Shown here piece after piece: positions 5,838 to 17,555 of a stretch of 64,000 nt of DNA. The DNA comes from Vitrella brassicaformis CCMP3155 (lineage: Eukaryota > Protista > Chromerida), in the NCBI GenBank assembly GCA_001179505.1, contig CDMY01000486.1, positions 3,722-67,721 of the forward strand, written 5' to 3'. Positions within the stretch are counted from its first letter, which is position 1, and each line of letters starts with the position of its first letter. The notes beneath the pieces were generated by a model. It made no database searches and was not told where the DNA came from. It saw only the letters and a program-made list of their open reading frames with translations. The position numbers and the translations under genes are program-made.

Positions 5838-6240
5838 CCTTGCGGCAGATCTGCTCTGTCGGTGGACGCTGAGGCGATCGCTGCCTCCCTGGAGCTCGCA
5901 ATTGAAATCGCTGCGAAAAAGCGATGGTGTGGTTCGGTGAGGGGTTTCTGCCTTACGCCCGGCTGTGCATTGGCCTCACCCTCCTTTACCTGACGTCAAA
6001 AGTGCTCGGGGGTGTGGACTGGTTCGACGAGAAGCGGCTCACCAGGAAGGAGAAGGCCGAGAGGTACCAACGGAGGAAAGCCATATCGGCCCTCGACTGA
6101 CTGAACCAATCAAATCAATGCAGGTCAGTCAGCCGGGCCATGCAAGATGCACCATGCATTTCGCTCATTCGCTGTGTCTGTGTGTGCGCGCTGGTTGATA
6201 TGCGGATGCTGCAGCAGTGAGCTCACCAGACGCCCTCGCC

Positions 6241-7878
6241 ATGGCAGAGATGCCTGAGGGGTATGATCTGGTCTTTTCGCCAACGCCGACCGATGCCGAG
6301 AAGCGGCTCGTCCACCGCATTATGCACCGCCGCCTCCCCAATGCCTCCAGTGTGGTTACCCGCCTTGTCCGCAGGGGAGCCCGCCCGGCCAGCCTGCGTA
6401 TGCGGATCGAGCGCAGGGACGCCCCTCTCCACTACAATCTGGACTTGTCACTTGTCGGGCTGGCCATCGACGACGTCACGGGCAGCTACGTGTCCGCCTA
6501 CATGGACGGCGACGATCTGAAGCTGCCGTGCTGGTCGTCGCGAGAGGAGCAGAGGGAGGTGCTTGAGACGCTCATCCGTCATGGCTGCCAGCCGGGGCGC
6601 GAGGACCTGAAGACGGCCATCAGCATGGCGAATGCGGTGGCGGTGGAGGTGCTCCTGGCGCATGGCGTGGCTGTGGGTTCGTGGGCGCTGGTGCCGCCCC
6701 GGGTCAACGAGACGCCGGCGGACGAGTATTGCAGGAAGCTGCTGCAGATCTACCAGAGCTTGGTTGAGCGTGATGCGTCCATCATTGCCGTGCCGCAGCC
6801 GGTGCATCAGGTGCACGTGGCGAGACTGCGGCTGTACCCCGAGACCTTCACAGAGGGGTGAGGCAAGGCACGGCAGCAGAGGGAGATCGACAGACAGACA
6901 GACAGACAGGTGCATCGCATTTGTGTGTGTGTGTGCGTGTCTGTGTGTCTGTGTAGGTACCTAGATCTAGTCCTTGACAAGGGTGCTTCGGTAGCGCAGC
7001 TGCCGGGCAACGAGGGCGCCACCCTCCTCTCCCTCGCAGCCATGCTGGGGTGTCGATTCGTCGTCGCCTACCTCTCCAAGCACTTGCCCATAGCGCAGAT
7101 CGACGCCGTTGCCGACAACGGCACCGCCCTCGCCATCGCCGGCATGCAGATACGCAAATATGCTGGGGCTGACCGGCAGGCGGACTACTGCCATGTCGCT
7201 CGGTCCCTGCTGCGAGCTGGTGCGTCCATCGAGCAGCTGCTCACCCCTTTGAACGAGGACGAACGAGAGCAGCGGCGGCTGGTGGTCGACGAGTATGAGA
7301 AGGCGCTCAACGAGCTGCCCGACCAGCTGACGTCGGCACTCAACGACGCTCTTCGGCCGCACCGTTGTCTCGCGGAGTTCGTCGCATTCGTGCTCACCAC
7401 TCAGGCACCCCACAGCCACCCTGCCATCCCCGACCAAGAGGCATCCCTGCTGGCCTGGCGGATCGCGGCCTTCTGCATCGATTTGGAGGCCGCCCACGCT
7501 GCAGCCACTCGTGTGCTGAGGTCAGACTTCCCACTGGGCCGGCGCATCAACACGGCCATGGCGCATTTCGTGACATGTGCTGCGACCAAGACGGCGAGCA
7601 ACAGGGAGGTGGTGGGCGGGGTCATGGAGGTGAGGGGGGAGATGGTGCGGCTGCCGCCACTGCAGTGCTTTGGCGTCAACGAGGGCGACACGACAAGAGC
7701 GCTGGGTGTCCGGGAGGTGATCCACAAGGCGAGATTGGACGAGGCTGCACGATATCGGCTGTCTGGTGTGGCCAAGGGCTTCAACACCGACCTGGGCGAT
7801 GACGAGTGCCAGTTCCAGTGGCGGCAGCTGGGGCATTTGGATAAGACAGGCCAGTTCGTGTCGATGGGGATCGACTAG
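6241..7878 (+). CDS. Ankyrin-repeat-like protein of a probably lineage-expanded family; two exons (6241-~6857, ~6957-7878)
   Basis: ORFs 6217..6861 and 6910..7878 are joined by a GT..AG intron with CAGA/GT repeats. Ankyrin-like helices: DLKTAISMANAVAVEVLLAHGV, GATLLSLAAMLGCRFVVAYL, NGTALAIAG...VARSLLRAGA. C-terminus LGVREVIHKARLDEAARY..GVAKGFN. Confidence 0.6.
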
Positions 7879-8114
7879 ACGCGCGTCATGCATGAGGGGA
7901 ATGGGTGGCTGAGCAGTATTTTTCTGTGTTTGGCTGCTGTGATGAGACTGACGGGACGGCAGGCACATTGAATCGTATCCTTCATCCATCCATAAGAGTC
8001 CGCGCACAAGCACACAGATTCCGTATGGCACAAGTGCGATAGCGACCGCATCCATCAATCATCAAACGGAATAATAAAAGTCCATATGCTATGCCTCTCT
8101 CTCGGCCCTTTTGT

Positions 8115-10799
8115 CTACCGACCCCTCTCTAAATGCAGATGCCAATTGTGCTGGTGCACATGCAGATTCACAGCACCATACACCCCACCACCCCCCGACC
8201 CCTCAGTAGCGGCCGTCTCGCTGCCATGGTACATCACAACACTCCCGCAAGACACAAACTGCAGCGGCATCTCACCATCGCCGTACTCGGACGATGCTGG
8301 CACCGTGCTGTCGGCTGCCAGAGACACACTGTTGGGCACCACTGATGGCTCCGGGACAGAGGCGATGCCATCGGCATGGCTGTCCTCACTGCTGACAGGG
8401 CGGGAGGGCTGCTGCTGCTGCTGCTGATGCTGCTCGACGAAGCCCAGAGAAGGCGTCTGCGAAGCCGGCGTCTCTCCGTTGGGCTTCAGACTCGGCTCTT
8501 CCTCCCTCTCGTCTTTGTTGTCTGCCTTGGTGGCTGTCCCTGGCCCATCGGCGGCATTCACAGGCATTGTCTCAGACACACTGATGCCGTTCTCCTTGCC
8601 GCGGCTGGCCATCGATGGCGCAGGTACGCTGCCCTCACTGCTGGCGGGGCGCGACTGAAGGGCGCTGACGAATCCGTTCTGCACGACGGTAGCTGGAGTC
8701 GCGGCGGTGTGTTGGGGCGGGCTGGGGATGGAGAGAAGGGGTGTCTGCGACGCCGGTGTCTCCCCGTGGGATGACGCCGGTGCCGGTGCTGGTGTGCCCT
8801 TGACGGTGTCGGGTTGCTGCTGGCCCGTCTCGTCTTCTGCACCTGGTCGCTCTGCCGATGACCCACTGGCAACGGCCGCCTCAGACAAACCACCACGGGC
8901 ATCTCGCTGCGTCCCCATCTGACGGCCATCCCCCGCTGTGTGCACGCTGGTGGCGCTTGAGCTTGAAGGATGGGCAAGAGGGGAGGCCGTCGCAGCTTGC
9001 ATGGGCGGCGAGCTCTGCCGCAGGATGTCGCGGACCGCCAGGATGTCGTACCGCCCGTCATCTCGCACCTCCGGGAATCCATGCGGCTGTCGCCCCGCTG
9101 CTGCTGCCGATGCTGCTGGCTGCGAGCTCATCTTGCCGCCCCTGGATGCTTTGTATGTCTGGTAGCGCATGGCGACGATCAGGTCCAGCCACCCCAGGTC
9201 GGGGAAGGCGATAATGACCTCACGAGATGGGGAATCGGCACGCCGTGAGGTCGTCTCCCCAGTGGAAGCCAGCCGAAACCTGATGGGCTCGCCACGCTGC
9301 GGCCTGGGCGGCATGCCGCCCCACCGCAGCATCGTCGTGTACTGCGTGTCCATGTCGATGTCGCCGCCGCGCTTGTTCCACTCGTCCAGCGTCAGCCACT
9401 TGCCGCCCTGAGCGTCCCAACCGACCCACCTGAGGGATGACGGCCAGGCGCCCGTGGATGCGTCTCGGATGGGTGCTATGGCCAGGCCCTGTGTGGGTGT
9501 CTCCTTGGCACCCGTCATGACGGCCCATGCCGTGCTGCCGAACCGCTTGGCGACGAGGAGGTGAGGGAAGCAGGCGCCGTAGTTCATAGTGAGAGGGAAG
9601 ATGGTGGGCAGGTCGCGCAGCTTGTCGGATGCAGAGGAGAGCTCGAAGGCGGTGCCGATGGCCAGTTGGCCGCCCTTCATCGAGAGCACCGTGCACTTGG
9701 GCGTGCTGTTTGTGGGCGGTTCGTGGTGGGATGGGCTGAGGGACGACTGCGGGCGGCCGACGAACAGCAGTTTGTAAGACAAGGGGTCCGTCTGGATGCC
9801 CAACTGCTGAGAGAGGGCCGTCCTGATGTCCATCATGTTGCACGCGTCAGTAGGTATGGCCAGATCCTTCATCTGCGGCCCCTCCCTCTCGGTCAGCAGC
9901 AGCACGCGCAGCGTCAGCGACACCTCAATCGACGTGGGATAGAACACCTTGGGCCTGCCCGTGCCCGTGCCCATCCCGTCGTCGGGCAGGTGATACCACT
10001 TCCTGCCCCAGAGCCCGTCGACACTCAGGCGGCCGTTCATGATGCTCCGGCTGCCAGTGGCAGGGCAGTAGGCCACAATCACGCGCCGGCCCCTTGGCGT
10101 CAGCCGCGAGAGGAGCTCGTCGTCGGCAGCCGTGGTGTGGCCGTCGACGCGCATGAGGCACCAGACCTGCCTCTGCACCAACACCAGCTCATAGACGGGC
10201 TGCTGCTGCTGCTGCTGGTCGCCCGTGCTGCTGCTGCTGCTGCTGCGATACATGATCAGAGAGGGGTAGGGGTCGGGGGGGCTGGTCTGTGACGATACTG
10301 ATGCGGTGGCTGTGGCTGCGCCTGTGAGGCGGATGTCCTCGACCCGCGTGAAGGTCAAGTCGGGGGGTATGGGAGAGGGCAGCCCAGTAACCCTGGCCTC
10401 CCTGCCGGCACTCAGATGCAGCGCCTCGTACGTCTCGCTCGTCGTCCCCCCCATGGCCTCCCTGTCTGCCGCCTTCTGCACAGTGCGATGGAGCAGCTCG
10501 CACAAGCGGGAGTACGGGAGAGAGGTGGCAGTGGCCGGCAGCACCTCTGACTTGATAGTCGTCATGCTGGCGTGGGAGAAAGTGGGGGAGCCGGCCCGGG
10601 GGGGGACGGGATGCTGGCAGCAGAGAGGAAAGAAAGGGGAGAGAGATGGGCGAATGAATTGTGGGGCGGTGTGTCTTGGCTTGAGCAAAATGGAATGTCT
10701 GTCACCCACCTGTGTGATGGTGAATGAGGAGCGGCTCTTCTGTTCGTTGAGGTCGGTGCGGTCGCAGTAGGACAGGATGACCTGCAGGGCGTGGCACCA

Positions 10800-10831
<32 letters not shown>

Positions 10832-12023
10832 TAGAGAAATGGGTAAAGTACAACAAGTGGCGAGGTGTGTCACTCCCTGACTCACCACTTGTCCGTCCAG
10901 GTAGGTGTGGTTGAGGCACAGTGCATCGCGGCGGTCGGCCTCCTTCGCGAACTCCAGATAGAAAGTCGACTTGGGCAGACAACTCTCACTGACACAACGC
11001 ACACACACACACACAGACACACCCACCCACGGCAATGCACCACCTGAGATGATGATTGGCCAATGTATTAGTGGCACGCTCACTTGTTTTGGTCGATGCA
11101 GTCGTCCCTGGGTTTGCTGTGCCACACGTGCTTGGCCGGCCCGCGGAACATCTCTATCACAGACTGACACACACACACACACATGGCCCCCTGCACCCCA
11201 GGCCTGGGCTGATCTGATCGACCCACCCACCTCAACAGGCGTTTCACAGTGCAGCTTGGTCTTAATGTAGAACTTCTTCCTCTGATGCTTGGACGCCGCC
11301 GCCCTCAGCACCGCAATGCGATTGAGGATCTCATCGACGGACGAGCACGCAGCGGCCTCTTTGATAGCAGACATCACCTTGGCCTGACCGGCCCGGTCGA
11401 GCTGTGAGGCGTGGTTGAACGACCTGTCCAGTGGATCTGACACACACACACACATACACACGTACGACAAAGGAGTGGACTGCTTCCCGTCATCGACTTA
11501 CCTTCGATGACCCATGCTTGCTGCCCATCCCCCTTGAGCCGCTCCTCGCCCAGCCAGTCGGCACGCTTGGTGGTGCTGCCAGTGCCGCCCTGCCGCACGG
11601 ACACGACCCACTTGAGGAGGTCGAACCTACTGCCGTAGAAGCGAAAGAACCCCATGACCAGCTCATCCAGACTCTTGACGGCCTGCGACAGACACACACA
11701 CAGACACTGTCAGTGTGGCGGCATTGGGTGGGTGGGTGTGGCCGCGTGGTATCTATCAGTGCTGTGCTGACGTTATCAGTGCTCGCTGGTGCTGGTGCTG
11801 GTGTGGGTGGCGATGTGAGGAAGCACACGTCGATCCTGCTCTTGTTGTCTCGTGTGGTGCGTCTGCACCGGTAGATGGAGGGGCTGTCGGCCGGCACATC
11901 CTCCGGCACACGCTGCAGATTGGGCAACACACCTTTAACCTGCACATGAACGAACGAACAAGGAAACACAGACAGACATACAGACAGATATGTGTGTGTG
12001 TGATGTGATGTGATGTGATGTGA

Positions 12024-12054
<31 letters not shown>

Positions 12055-12913
12055 CTGTAGGTAGAAGATGGTCATGAGGATGAGGCCGTAGCTCGTCATG
12101 CTCTCGCCCTCGGCAGACACCAATCCCTCACTCTTGGCCCACTTCTGCAGTCAGTGGAATGTACACCACACCACACCACACACAAGGGGACGTGTTGTGT
12201 TGTGTTGTGCTGTGTCGCGTGACGTGACGTCGTCTGAATGCCGGTGTGACGCCGGTGTGATTGACCTTGATGAGCCGCCCCATGTGTGCCACGCGGCCAT
12301 GTGGGTCGGCATCGCAGTAGGCCTTGAGGAGGTGCGTGTTGTCCACGGCCAGGGCGTTGTTGACGCTCAGATCCACCTCCACACCTACACACCCACACAC
12401 ACCACACACACATCCACACCACCACACACGCAGGCAGGCCAACTCACCTCGGTGCTCCATCTTGAGTATAGGTACGCGGGCCGCAAACACCCGTGCGATG
12501 CGTCCGAACGAGTGCCGCTCCAGCACCGGCACCAAATCGCCCAAGAGCCGCTTCTGAAGCATCTGACGGTCCGGGATCTCGCCAGGATAGATCCCCTGGA
12601 GGTCTTTGGGGTTGATCAGAATCGTCACATCGATGTCCGAGCCCTGTGTTGCAAACCCATTCATCGACCCGCCGAACGCCGCACACGTGAAGGACGAGGC
12701 CGCCTTGCCATGCAGCTCCCGCAGGCAGCCCGAGAGCTGGCTGCATGTGTCATTGACAAGCTGCGGGAAACTGTCTGCCGGTGCGATTGAGTCGATGAAG
12801 CTCTGCAGGGCGGCCGACTTGACCGTGGCTGAGCCATGCAGGGAGGGGGAGGTGCCGTTGGCGGTGCCAGTGTTGTTGTTGCTCTCGGCAGATGCGTCGT
12901 AACTCTCTGACAT
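8115..12913 (-). CDS. Non-canonical poly(A)/poly(U) polymerase (Cid1/TUTase/TENT family) with downstream RRM-like domain and ~890-aa terminal exon
   Basis: FGGSMNGFATQGSDIDVTI (pol-beta GS-x-DxD signature), ARVPILK, EVDLSVNN (third Asp), MTSYGLILMTIFYLQ, LDELVMGFFRFYG, WVIE|DPLDRSFNHA (PAP-associated domain). Then KFYIKTK...STFYLEFAKEADRRDALCLNHTYLDGQ|VILSYC (RRM-like). Last exon about 10782..8115. Confidence 0.9.
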
Positions 12914-13026: not shown

Positions 13027-13114
13027 ACGAAGATTCATGCGCAAACCGCTGTCAGAGGCAAAATCGTCCAAAATCGAGGAGGTTCTTTCGCTACTAAGCT
13101 TGCAATACCGCAAG

Positions 13115-15868
13115 ATGAGGCTGAAAGTGGAGATGGATGATGCCTCTGTGGCACTTGATGCCACTGAGGAGCCGCTGAGGCGGTCGCTCGTCCTCGTATC
13201 TGACAATATCACCAACATCGGGTGAGGCAGCACACACATGGAGGAGGAAGGCAGATGGACTGGAGGCACCAGGGCCTGCATGACGAGCATGGATGGACTG
13301 TTTGTTAACCTTGGTCTGGTCTGTGTGTCCTCTCCGCTCAGTGAGCTGATCTCTCACCTGCAGGGCCAGTTCGGCTTCCTCGCTGCTCCTCGTGTGCCAT
13401 ACCTGTCACTGGATGGCTTTACTCTGCCGCCGTCACAGCCGCTGGGCATCCTCCGGGACACTGACGTCGTCCGGTGGGCACACGATACATCCGCAACACA
13501 CACACACACCGGCCATTCTTGACCTCTCTGGCCTTGGTGGTTGTCAGGGTGCATCTGGTGGGTCAGCAGCGGGACCCCGCTGCTGCAGCCGCCTCTGCCC
13601 GCACCGATGAGCAGGAGACGATGGTCGCCACCGCTCCTCCACTCGCCCAGCCCATCCATCCCGTCAAGTTCGAGCCACAGACACATGACAACGGCCAGGC
13701 AGAGAGGAGCATCGACAGGGCTCCTCTTCCTCCGCCAGATGCAGTCGCCAGCAAGCGGCCGTGCGACGAGCATGTGGATGCAAAAGGAGCGGCAACGGGC
13801 GAGTCGCGGCACAAGCGAGTACGCAGGCGGCGCAGGAGGAAGAAGGAAGACCATGGTGAGGCAGGGGTGGCTGCCGAGGTGCTGCTTGATGAGACAATGC
13901 CGGCAGAGACATCGACAGAAATCAAGGCTGGCGACCTTATCAGCGTCGCCAGGCTCACCGAGCCCATTGATCCTGGCGTCCGAGATGTGTCAAGCATCGC
14001 TCCCGACCCCAGTCAGCGGCAGCCCTACATCGGCCAGGAGCGAGTCGGTGACATTTTGCGAAAGCTTGTCGGGCGCTATGAAGCAAACGACGGCGACCAT
14101 GTGGTCCGTGTGGAGCCAATGGTTATCACTCGTTTTTCGCGTGGGGGGAAGACGAGATTAATGAAGCAGATCGGGGCAGGCCTCCACACGCAAGGCATCC
14201 CTGCCCTATTCATCACGTATGCATGTAGAAGCAGACAGACAGAGGCAGAGGCTGATTCGTATACACTCACTCAGCAATGATGAGCTATGTGTTTCTTCTT
14301 GTGCGTGGCCATCTATCCATCGTTCTGCAGGTTCAACGAGCAGACAACGCCCACTGACTTTGAGCTATCTGCCTGCAGCCCGCTGCAGTCCATCTCGTTG
14401 CGGATAGCCTGGGCCACTGCAACGCCGGAGGCTCTCGAGAAGGTGGCACAGGCTCTGAAAAAGCCTGTAGCCGAACTCACCTTCGACGACTGGGTGCGGA
14501 CTGTCTCGGTCAGCCATCGGACCATCAAAGAGTGGCTCGGCAGCGGCCCTCTGGTCCTCTTTGTTGACGAACTCAACCAGCGCATCCCCTCAAACACTGT
14601 GTTCGAGGAAGAGCCATTGGCACTGGAGCTGGCTGACTTTGTTCTTCAGCACTTTCTCAACAAGCGGCAGCGTTACTTTGTGTTTTCGAGCCAGGTCGCC
14701 GCACTAGGGAACAGTCTCCTGAGGTACTACTCGAGGTTCGGCTTTCGCGGCGTGTACAAATTGCAAATCCCGAGGGTCGAGAGAATCTCTGCTGTGACCG
14801 AGAGCGGCATCTGCTCAGGCACACACGCTGGTATCGTCTCCTGGACTGGACGGGTGCCTGGTTTGCTGACGCTTATGTACTCGAATGAGCCGCCGCAGCC
14901 AAACAACGTCCGACAGCCCTTTAAAGCCATGGAAGCCCCTCGTCTTGACGCGGACCTTGCTCGAGCCGTCATTCAAACAGCGATTGAGGGCGACGGAAAG
15001 CTTCTGGGCAGACTGGGGACGTGGTCGCGCTTCCTAGACGTCTTCGGCTATTCGTGTGTGTGGCCGCCATGCTATCTGGGGCTGGCGTGTGACGAGTTGG
15101 GGAAGGCCCCGGAGGTCAAGAAGGCCCTCGGCAAAGGCTTCGCGACTGGCCTGAGGTTGATCCCCACGCTTCTGGACCAGCTACTCGATGAGAGGGAGTC
15201 CGGCAAGCGATGGGAGGGCGTTGCCGTCGCAGAGGTGCTCCTCCGACTCCTCTACAGTCACTTGGAAGGAACCGGAGGTTCACTTGAGCATGGCGGCAGC
15301 TCAGCTGGTCCCTGATGCAGTCGACGATGGATGCAAGTTTGGGGGCGTCATCACCGCAAGCCAGCCGGAGACGCTCAAGGCGCTCATCACCGAGTTCCAC
15401 CAGAAGATGGACCCGACACTCGCAGGAGAGCGCTACGTCTCTTATTTCGTCAAGCCCATAGACTCAACTCTCCACGGCTTCAGCTTCTTCGTCTTTGTGA
15501 CCGAGTACGGCAGCTTGACGACAATCTACGGCGGCCAGTGCAAGGAGAGACCGACGGGCTCCGACAAAGACTTCATCATCATCAAGCACAGTGTGTCTGA
15601 AGCGGTCGCATCGCTGGCGCCAGACGAGGGCGACCCTGAGGCTATCAATGCCTCAGCGAGGGTCTACTTTCGTGGCATCTGGCTGTGCGGTGACGATGAT
15701 CAGGGGCAGGAGGTAAACATTAACAAACGGTCGGAGCGAGATATCGGTGTGGTGCCATCACGTGCCGCCATTGAGGAGGTTATCGGTGTGTCTCTTGCGC
15801 AGATGTGTCCTTTCGAATGGCTGGTAGAGGGAAAAGACCAGGCCGGCGGGGAAGGGACAGGGGCTTAG
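13115..15868 (+). CDS. Chimeric protein: coilin-N-like ubiquitin-fold domain + basic NLS + Crinkler-type P-loop NTPase + PD-(D/E)XK-fold domain; frame change near 15257-15320 (small intron or frameshift)
   Basis: Exons 13115-13221, 13342-13473, 13548-14216, 14331-> splice in phase to MRLKVEMDD...RRSLVLVSDNITNIGELISHLQGQFGF...YLSLDGFTLPPSQPLGILRDTDVVRV; RHKRVRRRRRRKKE; MVITRFSRGGKT (Walker A); FITFN; LVLFVDELN (Walker B); ESGKRWE; YFVKP..LHGFSFFV...IYGGQCKE. Confidence 0.75.
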
Positions 15869-16392
15869 CTTCTTCAGTCGGTTGGGTGTCAAGTATGTCT
15901 GTCTGGTGCGTGTGACTTTACTCACGACGAGAATGTGGTCCAGTCCCTTGTGGGGTTTGGGGTGCATATGTGTATAGTTAGTCATATGCATGTGGGTGGC
16001 TGGGTGAATACCTACCTACATGTGATGTGTGTCTCTCGCAACTATGGCAGGCAGCCATACCTCAGATCAGATCATGCACGTACAAACCGACTGACATTAA
16101 CATGACGTACGACAGACAGGTCCTGCACTTAGCTTTGTCCGTCTGACTGGTCTACCTACCGGTCCGCATCCCGCGTGAATATCACTGAACCACCAACGCG
16201 TCCATCACCGCACCATCCACCAACGCACACCTTCCCCATTCCCTTTTCCCACCCTCTCTATCCACCAAGCACGGCAAACAGACATACAGACAGGTGCACT
16301 GTGTGTTGTCTGTAATTGCAGGCAAGCACAACTGACTGACGGCCAGGCACACTCCCTTCCAGTCTGTTTCAATTGTTTTACGGAGTCCCTCC

Positions 16393-17555
16393 GTCGAGCT
16401 CAGATTTCTCCATGTACAGTGCACTGGATGAAAATGACCTATCAGATCTGCCTGTGTCTACATATCTGCCTTCGTCGAGGCGGTCTGTCGCTCATAAACT
16501 TACTCTTACTAGGACAGACACGTACGACAAAGAACGACACAAAAACTGACCACACAGCCCACACCCCAGAGCAGCCTTCACCAACACGAAACACAGGGCT
16601 AGGCCAGCCAAGGAAGGTCGCTCATTGGCCATCAGCAATCCTGCGGGTTCCCCACTGTCTCAGGAGGGACGTTCTGCTGTGGCAGTGCCGTCCATTGTGT
16701 ACTCCTCTGTCTACTGTCTTCATCCATATCGAACATCACTCCAGAGAAGTAGGTGAGGAGCGCACAGAGGAAACAAACGAGAATATTGTAGCCGCTAAAC
16801 ACCGCCTCCCCGGGTATACACTTGGTTTCATGTAGGTCATCTTTGGAGACGATGCCCTGGACGATGCTGCGAGAATAACGAGCGGAACGAAAGGACAGGA
16901 ACCAACCCAGCACCAGAAGAAAGGCGCCACCCAGCACAGCTGCCATGGACAGGTCAATCAGCTTAAGGGGTTTCCGAGACTTAACAGCGGCCTCCAGACA
17001 TCCAAAGCCACAGCAAGCCACAACCATCAAGAAGAGAGCCAGACTCGCCGTGACATAGAACTTGATGCCCACTGCCTTGGCCTTCCGCCACTTAGTCTCC
17101 ATCTCGTCGTTTCCTGCTGCTTTGTCGATCAGGAAGTCATAGGATGCTCGGCAGTGACAGTGGACGACGTCAGGTTGCTCTCTCAGGCGCTCACGAGTCT
17201 TGACGCTCTCCTTGCAGTGCTCGAACTGCAGTTCGCCAGTGAGAGGCGTCTTGACGCTCTCACTGAGAGGCGTCTTGACGCTCTCACTGGCACAGCGGAC
17301 GTCCCCCGACGCAAAGCAGTCAACTTCTTCGTTGTCACGGCAGACACGGTGGAGCTCGACCTCCAGGTAGTAGATCTGCAGACTCGTCCATTGCTCAATC
17401 TTCATGAGGGACAGCTCTCTTGAGGCGAAGGCCGTACACACTGACCAGGAGCGGCCAGCCAGAGTCGAGAGGAGCGGAGTAAGGGCCAGAATGAGAGGAA
17501 GGAGAGTGAGCCGGCGCGTCTTCAGTGAGAGTTTCTCGTCATCATCGCTCATCTC
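16393..17555 (-). repeat. Inverted segmental duplication, arm 1 (partner 26195..27327)
   Basis: Reverse complement aligns with 26195-27327 over the CDS and about 240 bp of 3' flank. Confidence 0.92.
16632..17552 (-). CDS. Intronless four-TM claudin/PMP22-like membrane protein (paralog A)
   Basis: Single ORF from MSDDDEKLSL: N-terminal TM, Cys-rich loop (W..C...WTSLQIYYLEVELHRVC...DCF...C...C...CHC), three further hydrophobic helices, and a Pro/Gln tail. Close paralog of 26198..27088. Confidence 0.7.
   Translation of the reverse strand: MSDDDEKLSLKTRRLTLLPLILALTPLLSTLAGRSWSVCTAFASRELSLMKIEQWTSLQIYYLEVELHRVCRDNEEVDCFASGDVRCASESVKTPLSESVKTPLTGELQFEHCKESVKTRERLREQPDVVHCHCRASYDFLIDKAAGNDEMETKWRKAKAVGIKFYVTASLALFLMVVACCGFGCLEAAVKSRKPLKLIDLSMAAVLGGAFLLVLGWFLSFRSARYSRSIVQGIVSKDDLHETKCIPGEAVFSGYNILVCFLCALLTYFSGVMFDMDEDSRQRSTQWTALPQQNVPPETVGNPQDC

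Follow-up and report, generated by a model that had tools for sequence, protein, structure and literature searches.

We analyzed a 64,000-nucleotide stretch of contig CDMY01000486.1 (assembly GCA_001179505.1; the whole stretch is called the window below) from Vitrella brassicaformis CCMP3155, a free-living photosynthetic relative of apicomplexans. On its forward strand lies a chimeric gene: its 5' part is a copy of the front of the species' own coilin-like gene, and the rest is a copy of a member of a multi-copy family of nucleoside triphosphatases (NTPases) (Table 1). There is very little doubt that this gene is young and specific to V. brassicaformis, and that it arose in the DNA itself, through two duplications and a single joint that keeps the reading frame. 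The 22,754 bases around it (L005) match the public contig exactly, and its product is already public as protein P0121, whose splice junctions are identical to ours for introns 1-3. The window DNA is about 58% G+C, and the introns are short and bounded by GT and AG; the junctions 13473/13548 and 14216/14331, which an earlier note had proposed from the letters of this DNA, match two of these introns exactly. All the peptides quoted in that note are likewise encoded where it had placed them.

The parents and the joint

The first 825 bases of the chimera (13082-13906) align by blastn with positions 7083-7915 of a locus on another contig, CDMY01000766.1 (L001), with 88% identity over 851 columns. 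Identity differs between segments, being 97% in exons 1 and 2, 82-84% in introns 1 and 2, and 93% in the shared part of exon 3, and in the 100 bp beyond either end it is only 32-38%, which amounts to no similarity. The gene at L001 encodes P0124 (CEM32845.1), the one other protein found with residues 1-110 of P0121 as query and 96% identical there. Over residues 1-199 the two proteins are 86% identical, and residues 7-89, the core of the Coilin_N domain, are the same in both. In Pfam, P0124 matches Coilin_N (36.5 bits against a cut-off of 32.9), La (62.7 against 37.1), and, below its cut-off, Tudor_Coilin (26.2 against 27). Because P0124 carries these three domains, we take it to be the species' coilin-like gene. 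Thus the proposal that a coilin 5' region had been captured as a head is borne out in the DNA, introns included, and a coilin-like gene is present elsewhere in the genome, a point the earlier note had raised for checking. The donor model itself (L001 7139-9807), with Coilin_N, a near-threshold Tudor_Coilin and La, may be a genuine fusion of coilin with La or a merger of two gene models.

In a four-way DNA alignment, homology to the NTPase family starts at about 13913, just beyond the end of the coilin copy. The closest relative is a paralog locus (L004), which is 92.5% identical to the window over 13922-15002 and 86% identical over 15210-16343 (blastn); a second paralog locus (L002) is 79% identical over 13918-15881. 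Three events produced this anatomy: about 0.8 kb was copied from the front of the coilin-like gene (start codon, Coilin_N, two introns, and a disordered linker with a basic nuclear localization signal, or NLS), about 2.4 kb was copied from an NTPase-family paralog, and the two pieces were joined within an exon, in frame, through non-homologous or microhomology joining. The copying was from DNA and not from mRNA, since introns are retained; a retrocopy was ruled out because all three introns are kept. Capture by a transposon might have left terminal inverted or direct repeats, and searches for these around 13082-16343 gave chance-level matches only, and no NTPase paralogs were found elsewhere within the window. 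As in other chimeric genes formed by duplication and exon-level joining, both parents are still in the genome, introns are kept, reading continues in frame across the joint, and a targeting part has been swapped. The mechanism is an ordinary one; what is of interest is the choice of the parts joined.

The same alignments bear on whether the chimera could be an artefact, either of contig assembly or of a gene model in which two neighboring genes were run together. The assembly is short-read based and in many contigs, and one intron of the public model is doubtful already. However, the two halves are 88% and 92% identical to their sources, that is, diverged from them by 8-12% with insertions and deletions, and source reads therefore cannot have been mis-joined to produce them; moreover, no intron interrupts the exon in which the joint lies, and one open frame of 669 bases runs across it. 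Mis-assembly was ruled out on these grounds, and an artefact of any kind is extremely improbable.

Table 1. Features of the chimeric gene and its two neighbors (positions in the window).
Feature	Position	Strand	Remarks
Chimeric gene	13115..15868	+	Public model CEM16866.1 (P0121, 793 aa); same bounds as public gene call
Copy of coilin-like gene 5' end	13082..13906	+	33 bp of 5' flank, exons 1 and 2, introns 1 and 2, first 359 bp of exon 3
Exon 1	13115..13221	+	ATG at 13115, GT donor at 13222; coilin-like gene has ATG at the aligned position
Coilin_N (ubiquitin-like) domain	13172..13623	+	Residues 20-105 of P0121; split by introns 1 and 2
Intron 1	13222..13341	+	120 nt, GT..AG; common to coilin-like gene
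Exon 2	13342..13473	+	Core of Coilin_N domain; Pfam Coilin_N E = 1e-4 from exon 2 alone
Intron 2	13474..13547	+	74 nt, GT..AG; common to coilin-like gene
Exon 3	13548..14216	+	Holds the joint of the two parental genes
Basic stretch RHKRVRRRRRRKKE	13807..13848	+	From the linker of the coilin-like gene; likely nuclear localization signal (role inferred from the coilin middle region in PMC9556525)
Joint	13907..13912	+	About 6 bases alien to both parents, beside short GNCAG microhomology (four-way DNA alignment)
Copy of NTPase-family paralog	13913..16343	+	From just ahead of the family N-terminal motif to 475 bp beyond the stop codon
Family N-terminal motif IKAGDLISVARL	13921..13956	+	Present in paralogs P0001, P0120, P0126, P0005, P0006, all without a coilin part
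Walker A-like loop RFSRGGKT	14131..14154	+	Columns R-G-G-K-T 84-96% conserved in family
Intron 3	14217..14330	+	114 nt, GT..AG; common to NTPase paralog loci L002 and L004
Remaining coding region	14331..15868	+	Walker B strand, helical and winged-helix part, C-terminal domain, single frame break
Walker B strand LVLFVDE	14551..14571	+	Asp invariant, Glu 89% conserved (92 relatives)
C-terminal domain, putative nuclease	15290..15865	+	D...QxK motif in family; degenerate in window copy
MTPAP-like nucleotidyltransferase gene	8115..12913	-	Upstream neighbor, divergent; outside chimera
Gene for 257-aa protein	16632..17405	-	Downstream neighbor, no family match; outside chimera

The coilin-derived head

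Pfam was run on each exon individually, with the public protein P0121 standing for the spliced product. P0121 matches Coilin_N (PF15862) with 37.9 bits (cut-off 32.9, E = 2e-9) at residues 20-105; together with the match of exon 2 alone and the DNA identity to the donor gene, this puts the likeness to coilin far outside the reach of chance. The linker that follows is common to the coilin-like gene and includes RHKRVRRRR, a putative NLS, so that the N-terminus is what the earlier note had taken it for, a coilin N-terminal domain followed by a basic NLS linker. The chimera shares Coilin_N, the two introns and the basic linker with coilin, the Cajal-body scaffold represented here by P0124, but it has no counterpart of coilin's Tudor-like C-terminal domain (Tudor_Coilin, PF23086) and is an unrelated NTPase beyond 13906. 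Pfam found no Tudor_Coilin match in P0121 or in any single exon, and the homology to the donor stops 5' of the donor's Tudor region. The motif IKAGDLISVARL, previously read as the beginning of coilin's Tudor region, was therefore misassigned: it lies beyond the end of coilin homology and is common to NTPase paralogs that have no coilin part. In a structural model of one such paralog (P0001) it is packed against the NTPase, with a predicted local distance difference test score (pLDDT) of 91-96.

Exons 1 and 2 differ from the donor gene by six synonymous changes and one non-synonymous change. A neutrally drifting head would be expected to have accumulated about eight non-synonymous changes where at most one is seen (p roughly 0.002, a Poisson estimate that assumes equal time for both copies at the synonymous rate). 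This pattern of substitutions shows a coilin head apparently under purifying selection. Gene conversion is an unlikely cause of its conservation, since intron 1, with a head exon on either side, is 18% diverged.

An NTPase family with several kinds of head

A full HMMER scan with exon 4 recovered 110 relatives. The close ones are all from Vitrella, at more than a dozen loci; Chromera velia, Symbiodinium, a Nitzschia diatom and the aphelid Amoeboaphelidium supply the more distant ones. Of the 20 relatives traced to their source, none is an oomycete protein. An alignment of 92 relatives shows a Walker A-like motif (R-x-x-R-G-G-K-T-R), a Walker B motif (hhhhDELN), the motifs F-x5-R-Y-x2-F-S-S-H and G-x2-W-E, and a C-terminal D...G-Y-Q-x-K, and the RFSRGGKT and LVLFVDE of the chimera fall on columns of this alignment that are 84-100% conserved. 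Given the same alignment, AlphaFold2 models the intact paralog P0001 with a pLDDT of 81 and a predicted template modeling score of 0.82. Foldseek matches this model in the PDB to CED-4, Avs3, and archaeal and yeast Cdc6/Orc1 with probability 1.00 over 390-580 aligned columns, at a sequence identity of 9-14% to the best structural matches. Because these are the best matches, we assign the core to a STAND/AAA+-like NTPase with a helical and winged-helix part, and the P-loop NTPase predicted from the chimera alone is confirmed, with Walker A and B columns kept. Sequence methods see little of this: Pfam gives AAA-type matches below threshold only (ATPase_2, AAA_16, AAA_22), neither exons 3 and 4 nor the family profile retrieved anything meaningful from the PDB by sequence, and neither PADLOC nor NCBIfam matched any of the seven family members searched. 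In the paralog model, the family shares with STAND/AAA+ proteins (CED-4, Cdc6/Orc1, and the bacterial NTPase-plus-nuclease effector Avs3) a P-loop core with Walker A and B, a helical lid and a winged helix; unlike them it has no sensor repeat region, and its domain order is not that of Avs3.

The N-termini of the family vary, and the suspicion that the NTPase half is a multi-copy family with different heads proved correct. In P0001/P0111, P0120, P0126, P0005/P0116, P0006 and P0119 a strongly hydrophobic N-terminal segment precedes the motif [AS]-x-x-F-[LMI]-H and then an Arg/Ser/Thr-rich stretch. As we read them, these leaders resemble the bipartite plastid leaders found in algae whose plastids are red-derived, a plain secretion signal being equally possible. 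P0008, P0012 and P0013 have short basic N-termini of the KKRK type. Judged from these N-termini, coilin is a third kind of head on the same NTPase body, and the swap has removed the leader: the coilin piece takes the place of the hydrophobic, signal-peptide-like segment of the closest paralogs.

Variable heads on an NTPase body recall the CR (Crinkler-RHS-type) effectors. According to Zhang et al. 2016, as far as a review summarizes that work (PMC5289972), the commonest Crinkler C-terminus consists of an NTPase, a helix-turn-helix and a restriction endonuclease-like (REase) domain, and the architecture of the present family fits this description. Further likenesses to CR effectors are the variable head, the P-loop NTPase with its helical/winged-helix part, the D...QxK domain, the multi-copy state, and the patchy spread among eukaryotes, here over chromerids, Symbiodinium, a diatom and an aphelid. 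In addition, the Crinkler header PF20147 (cut-off 24.6 bits) occurs N-terminal to the NTPase module in two distant relatives, P0024 from Nitzschia at 29.6 bits and P0099 at 21.4, the latter below the cut-off. These two relatives support the Crinkler-type kinship suggested in the earlier note. Pfam finds no PF20147 in the exons of the chimera or in P0121. The head of the chimera, Coilin_N, is no described CR header, and the family is likened to CR effectors by architecture, not by homology to named oomycete CRN domains.

These likenesses could suggest that the chimera encodes a Crinkler-type effector or toxin, in which the coilin head delivers an NTPase-nuclease to the Cajal bodies of a target cell. 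The window copy, however, is without the signal-peptide-like leader of its paralogs, the domain that would be the nuclease is out of frame with a motif residue missing and its REase fold has no significant Foldseek match, no Crinkler header is present, and the organism is a free-living phototroph. Nothing found here shows an effector role, which we regard as very unlikely.

The C-terminal domain

Family members end in a domain that carries the D...QxK motif on successive strands, in the order helix-strand-strand-strand-helix-strand, with the full D/Q/K triad present in 54 relatives. For the window copy, an AlphaFold2 model of this domain in its own frame has a pLDDT of 74.5 and the strand order expected of a PD-(D/E)xK core. 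Foldseek searches of the PDB and BFVD with this model gave no significant match, the best E values being 3.4e-3 (PDB) and 3.6e-3 (BFVD), to unrelated or unnamed proteins. The weak matches mix acetyltransferase and Ulp1-like protease folds, ricin-like proteins and one PD-(D/E)XK protein; we accepted neither a nuclease nor a protease assignment by structure, and the PD-(D/E)XK/REase fold proposed for this region is left without confirmation. Compared with CR effectors, then, the chimera has a putative nuclease fold only, with an incomplete motif, and the hydrophobic leader of its paralogs is gone. An acidic motif residue present in 92% of relatives is missing in the window copy and likewise in L004, and hence its loss predates the fusion.

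The peptides ESGKRWE and YFVKP are both encoded here, as the earlier note had reported, but the continuous reading from one to the other fails: they lie in different frames, separated by one frameshift relative to intact paralogs. Against P0001, the window gene has this one frame change, whereas the paralog loci L002 and L003 have none; besides it, no disruption of exonic homology was found. Two stop codons within the paralog alignment were put down to intron 3 being read through; for one of them the position was confirmed. The public model bypasses the frameshift by a short GT-AG intron that is present in no paralog.

Constraint and decay

To compare the parts of the protein, we counted changes unique to the window copy and to P0001, with P0005 as outgroup. 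In the NTPase exon there are 13 in each; in the C-terminal domain there are 13 in the window copy and 3 in P0001 (p = 0.02). The window copy keeps 57 of the 71 conserved family columns that it covers, with losses concentrated in the C-terminal domain: at conserved columns, the window copy and P0001 differ three times in the NTPase part and five times in the C-terminal domain, although the latter is much shorter. Both the head and the NTPase part still look constrained in their sequence, and the C-terminal domain, with one frameshift, a lost motif residue and faster evolution, looks released from constraint. Since it looks released, any present function most likely needs the head and the NTPase and not the nuclease. 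A role of the nuclease in the window copy is unlikely, and the Cajal-body-targeted nuclease that had been envisaged is unlikely as stated, given the damage to this domain.

Taken as a whole, the locus is probably best explained as a young in-frame chimera whose head and NTPase are constrained, whose product would be nuclear and coilin-associated, and whose tail is decaying. Several observations weigh against this explanation. The test of selection on the head consists of seven substitutions only, and the linker, with 6 synonymous and 18 non-synonymous differences from the donor gene, has a ratio of non-synonymous to synonymous change (dN/dS) of about 1. The frameshift, if real, closes the frame ahead of the C-terminal domain, and the public model escapes this only by its doubtful intron. 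The nearest paralog, L004, is itself broken: its frame changes twice, about 0.2 kb present in the window is gone from it, and the annotation splits it into two genes (6001-8136, models P0126 and P0004). The entire sub-lineage may therefore be in decay. No transcript-derived protein of the chimeric gene was among the protein-search matches, which leaves expression putative. Finally, localization and co-assembly are inferred by analogy with animal coilin, not chromerid coilin. An MMETSP transcript fragment, P0017, resembles the L004 sub-lineage, from which it follows that some decaying copies are transcribed.

Most of these observations would also be expected of a copy that was dead on arrival or has died since, a by-product of segmental duplication whose head is conserved only through gene conversion or youth: the frameshift with the lost motif residue, the linker at a dN/dS near 1, the missing transcript-derived protein, and the fragmented nearest paralog all fit such a history. 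Three features do not. The flanking introns differ from the donor by 16-18% and the head exons by 3%, nearly all of it synonymous, whereas a conversion tract would have homogenized intron 1; every insertion or deletion in the linker preserves the frame; and the NTPase exon has changed no faster than that of the intact paralog. We therefore regard a dead duplicate as rather unlikely, bearing in mind that, if the decay is recent, this explanation overlaps with one in which the chimera is functional.

A possible nuclear NTPase

How might a functional chimera act? Coilin's basic linker has been carried over, and the product would therefore be nuclear; the core of the N-terminal domain is identical to that of coilin, and the product may for this reason be able to co-assemble with the cell's own coilin. 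When combined with an NLS, the coilin N-terminal domain assembles into nuclear puncta in mammalian cells and associates with endogenous coilin (PMC9556525). The exchange of heads would redirect the product to the nucleus, away from a secretory or plastid route, and the NTPase would then sit at Cajal-body-like assemblies. We offer this functional reading tentatively, as one that could easily prove wrong. A more specific version of it, which we consider improbable, is that the chimera is a working, domesticated NTPase of the conflict type (Crinkler/STAND-like), with its leader swapped for the coilin head and NLS, recruited to the alga's own Cajal-body-like assemblies, and with its nuclease shed. 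If true, this would be a natural case of a nuclear-body address tag moved between genes.

The anatomy of the gene has consequences of its own. Because both parents are extant and the joint is resolved to a few bases, the locus documents a clean, datable case in which a gene was born when one targeting head was exchanged for another. The organisms that have Crinkler-type NTPase modules now include chromerid algae, whose paralogs number more than a dozen and carry at least three kinds of head (hydrophobic leader, short basic N-terminus, and coilin). A product, if there is one, would test the coilin N-terminal domain plus NLS as a portable nuclear-body address outside animals and plants; if there is none, the locus is a decaying duplicate patched by the annotation pipeline.

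The architecture is not as novel as first supposed. The protein is already in public databases, with the automatic name 'Coilin N-terminal domain-containing protein' in UniRef, though full-text literature searches for Vitrella with coilin or with Crinkler returned no paper on the chimera. Chimeric genes are known, as is head-swapping in Crinkler-type families; as far as we found, Coilin_N as a head is a new combination.

Neighboring genes and repeats

The two genes that flank the chimera are given in Table 1. We found no DNA or protein similarity between the MTPAP-like gene of the window and a second MTPAP-like gene that adjoins the nearest paralog (L004 9385-12866, minus strand), where the orientation differs from that in the window. 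Inside the gene for the 257-residue protein, a 24-nt unit occurs in two perfect tandem copies (17240-17289). A segment of about 250 bp (361-608 in the window, 4128-4380 in L001) is shared with 87% identity; it is unrelated to both genes and probably a dispersed repeat. Within the span of the MTPAP-like gene model lies a (TG)n microsatellite of about 28 copies (11991-12051), and CA/TG runs of a similar kind recur in the window and in L001.

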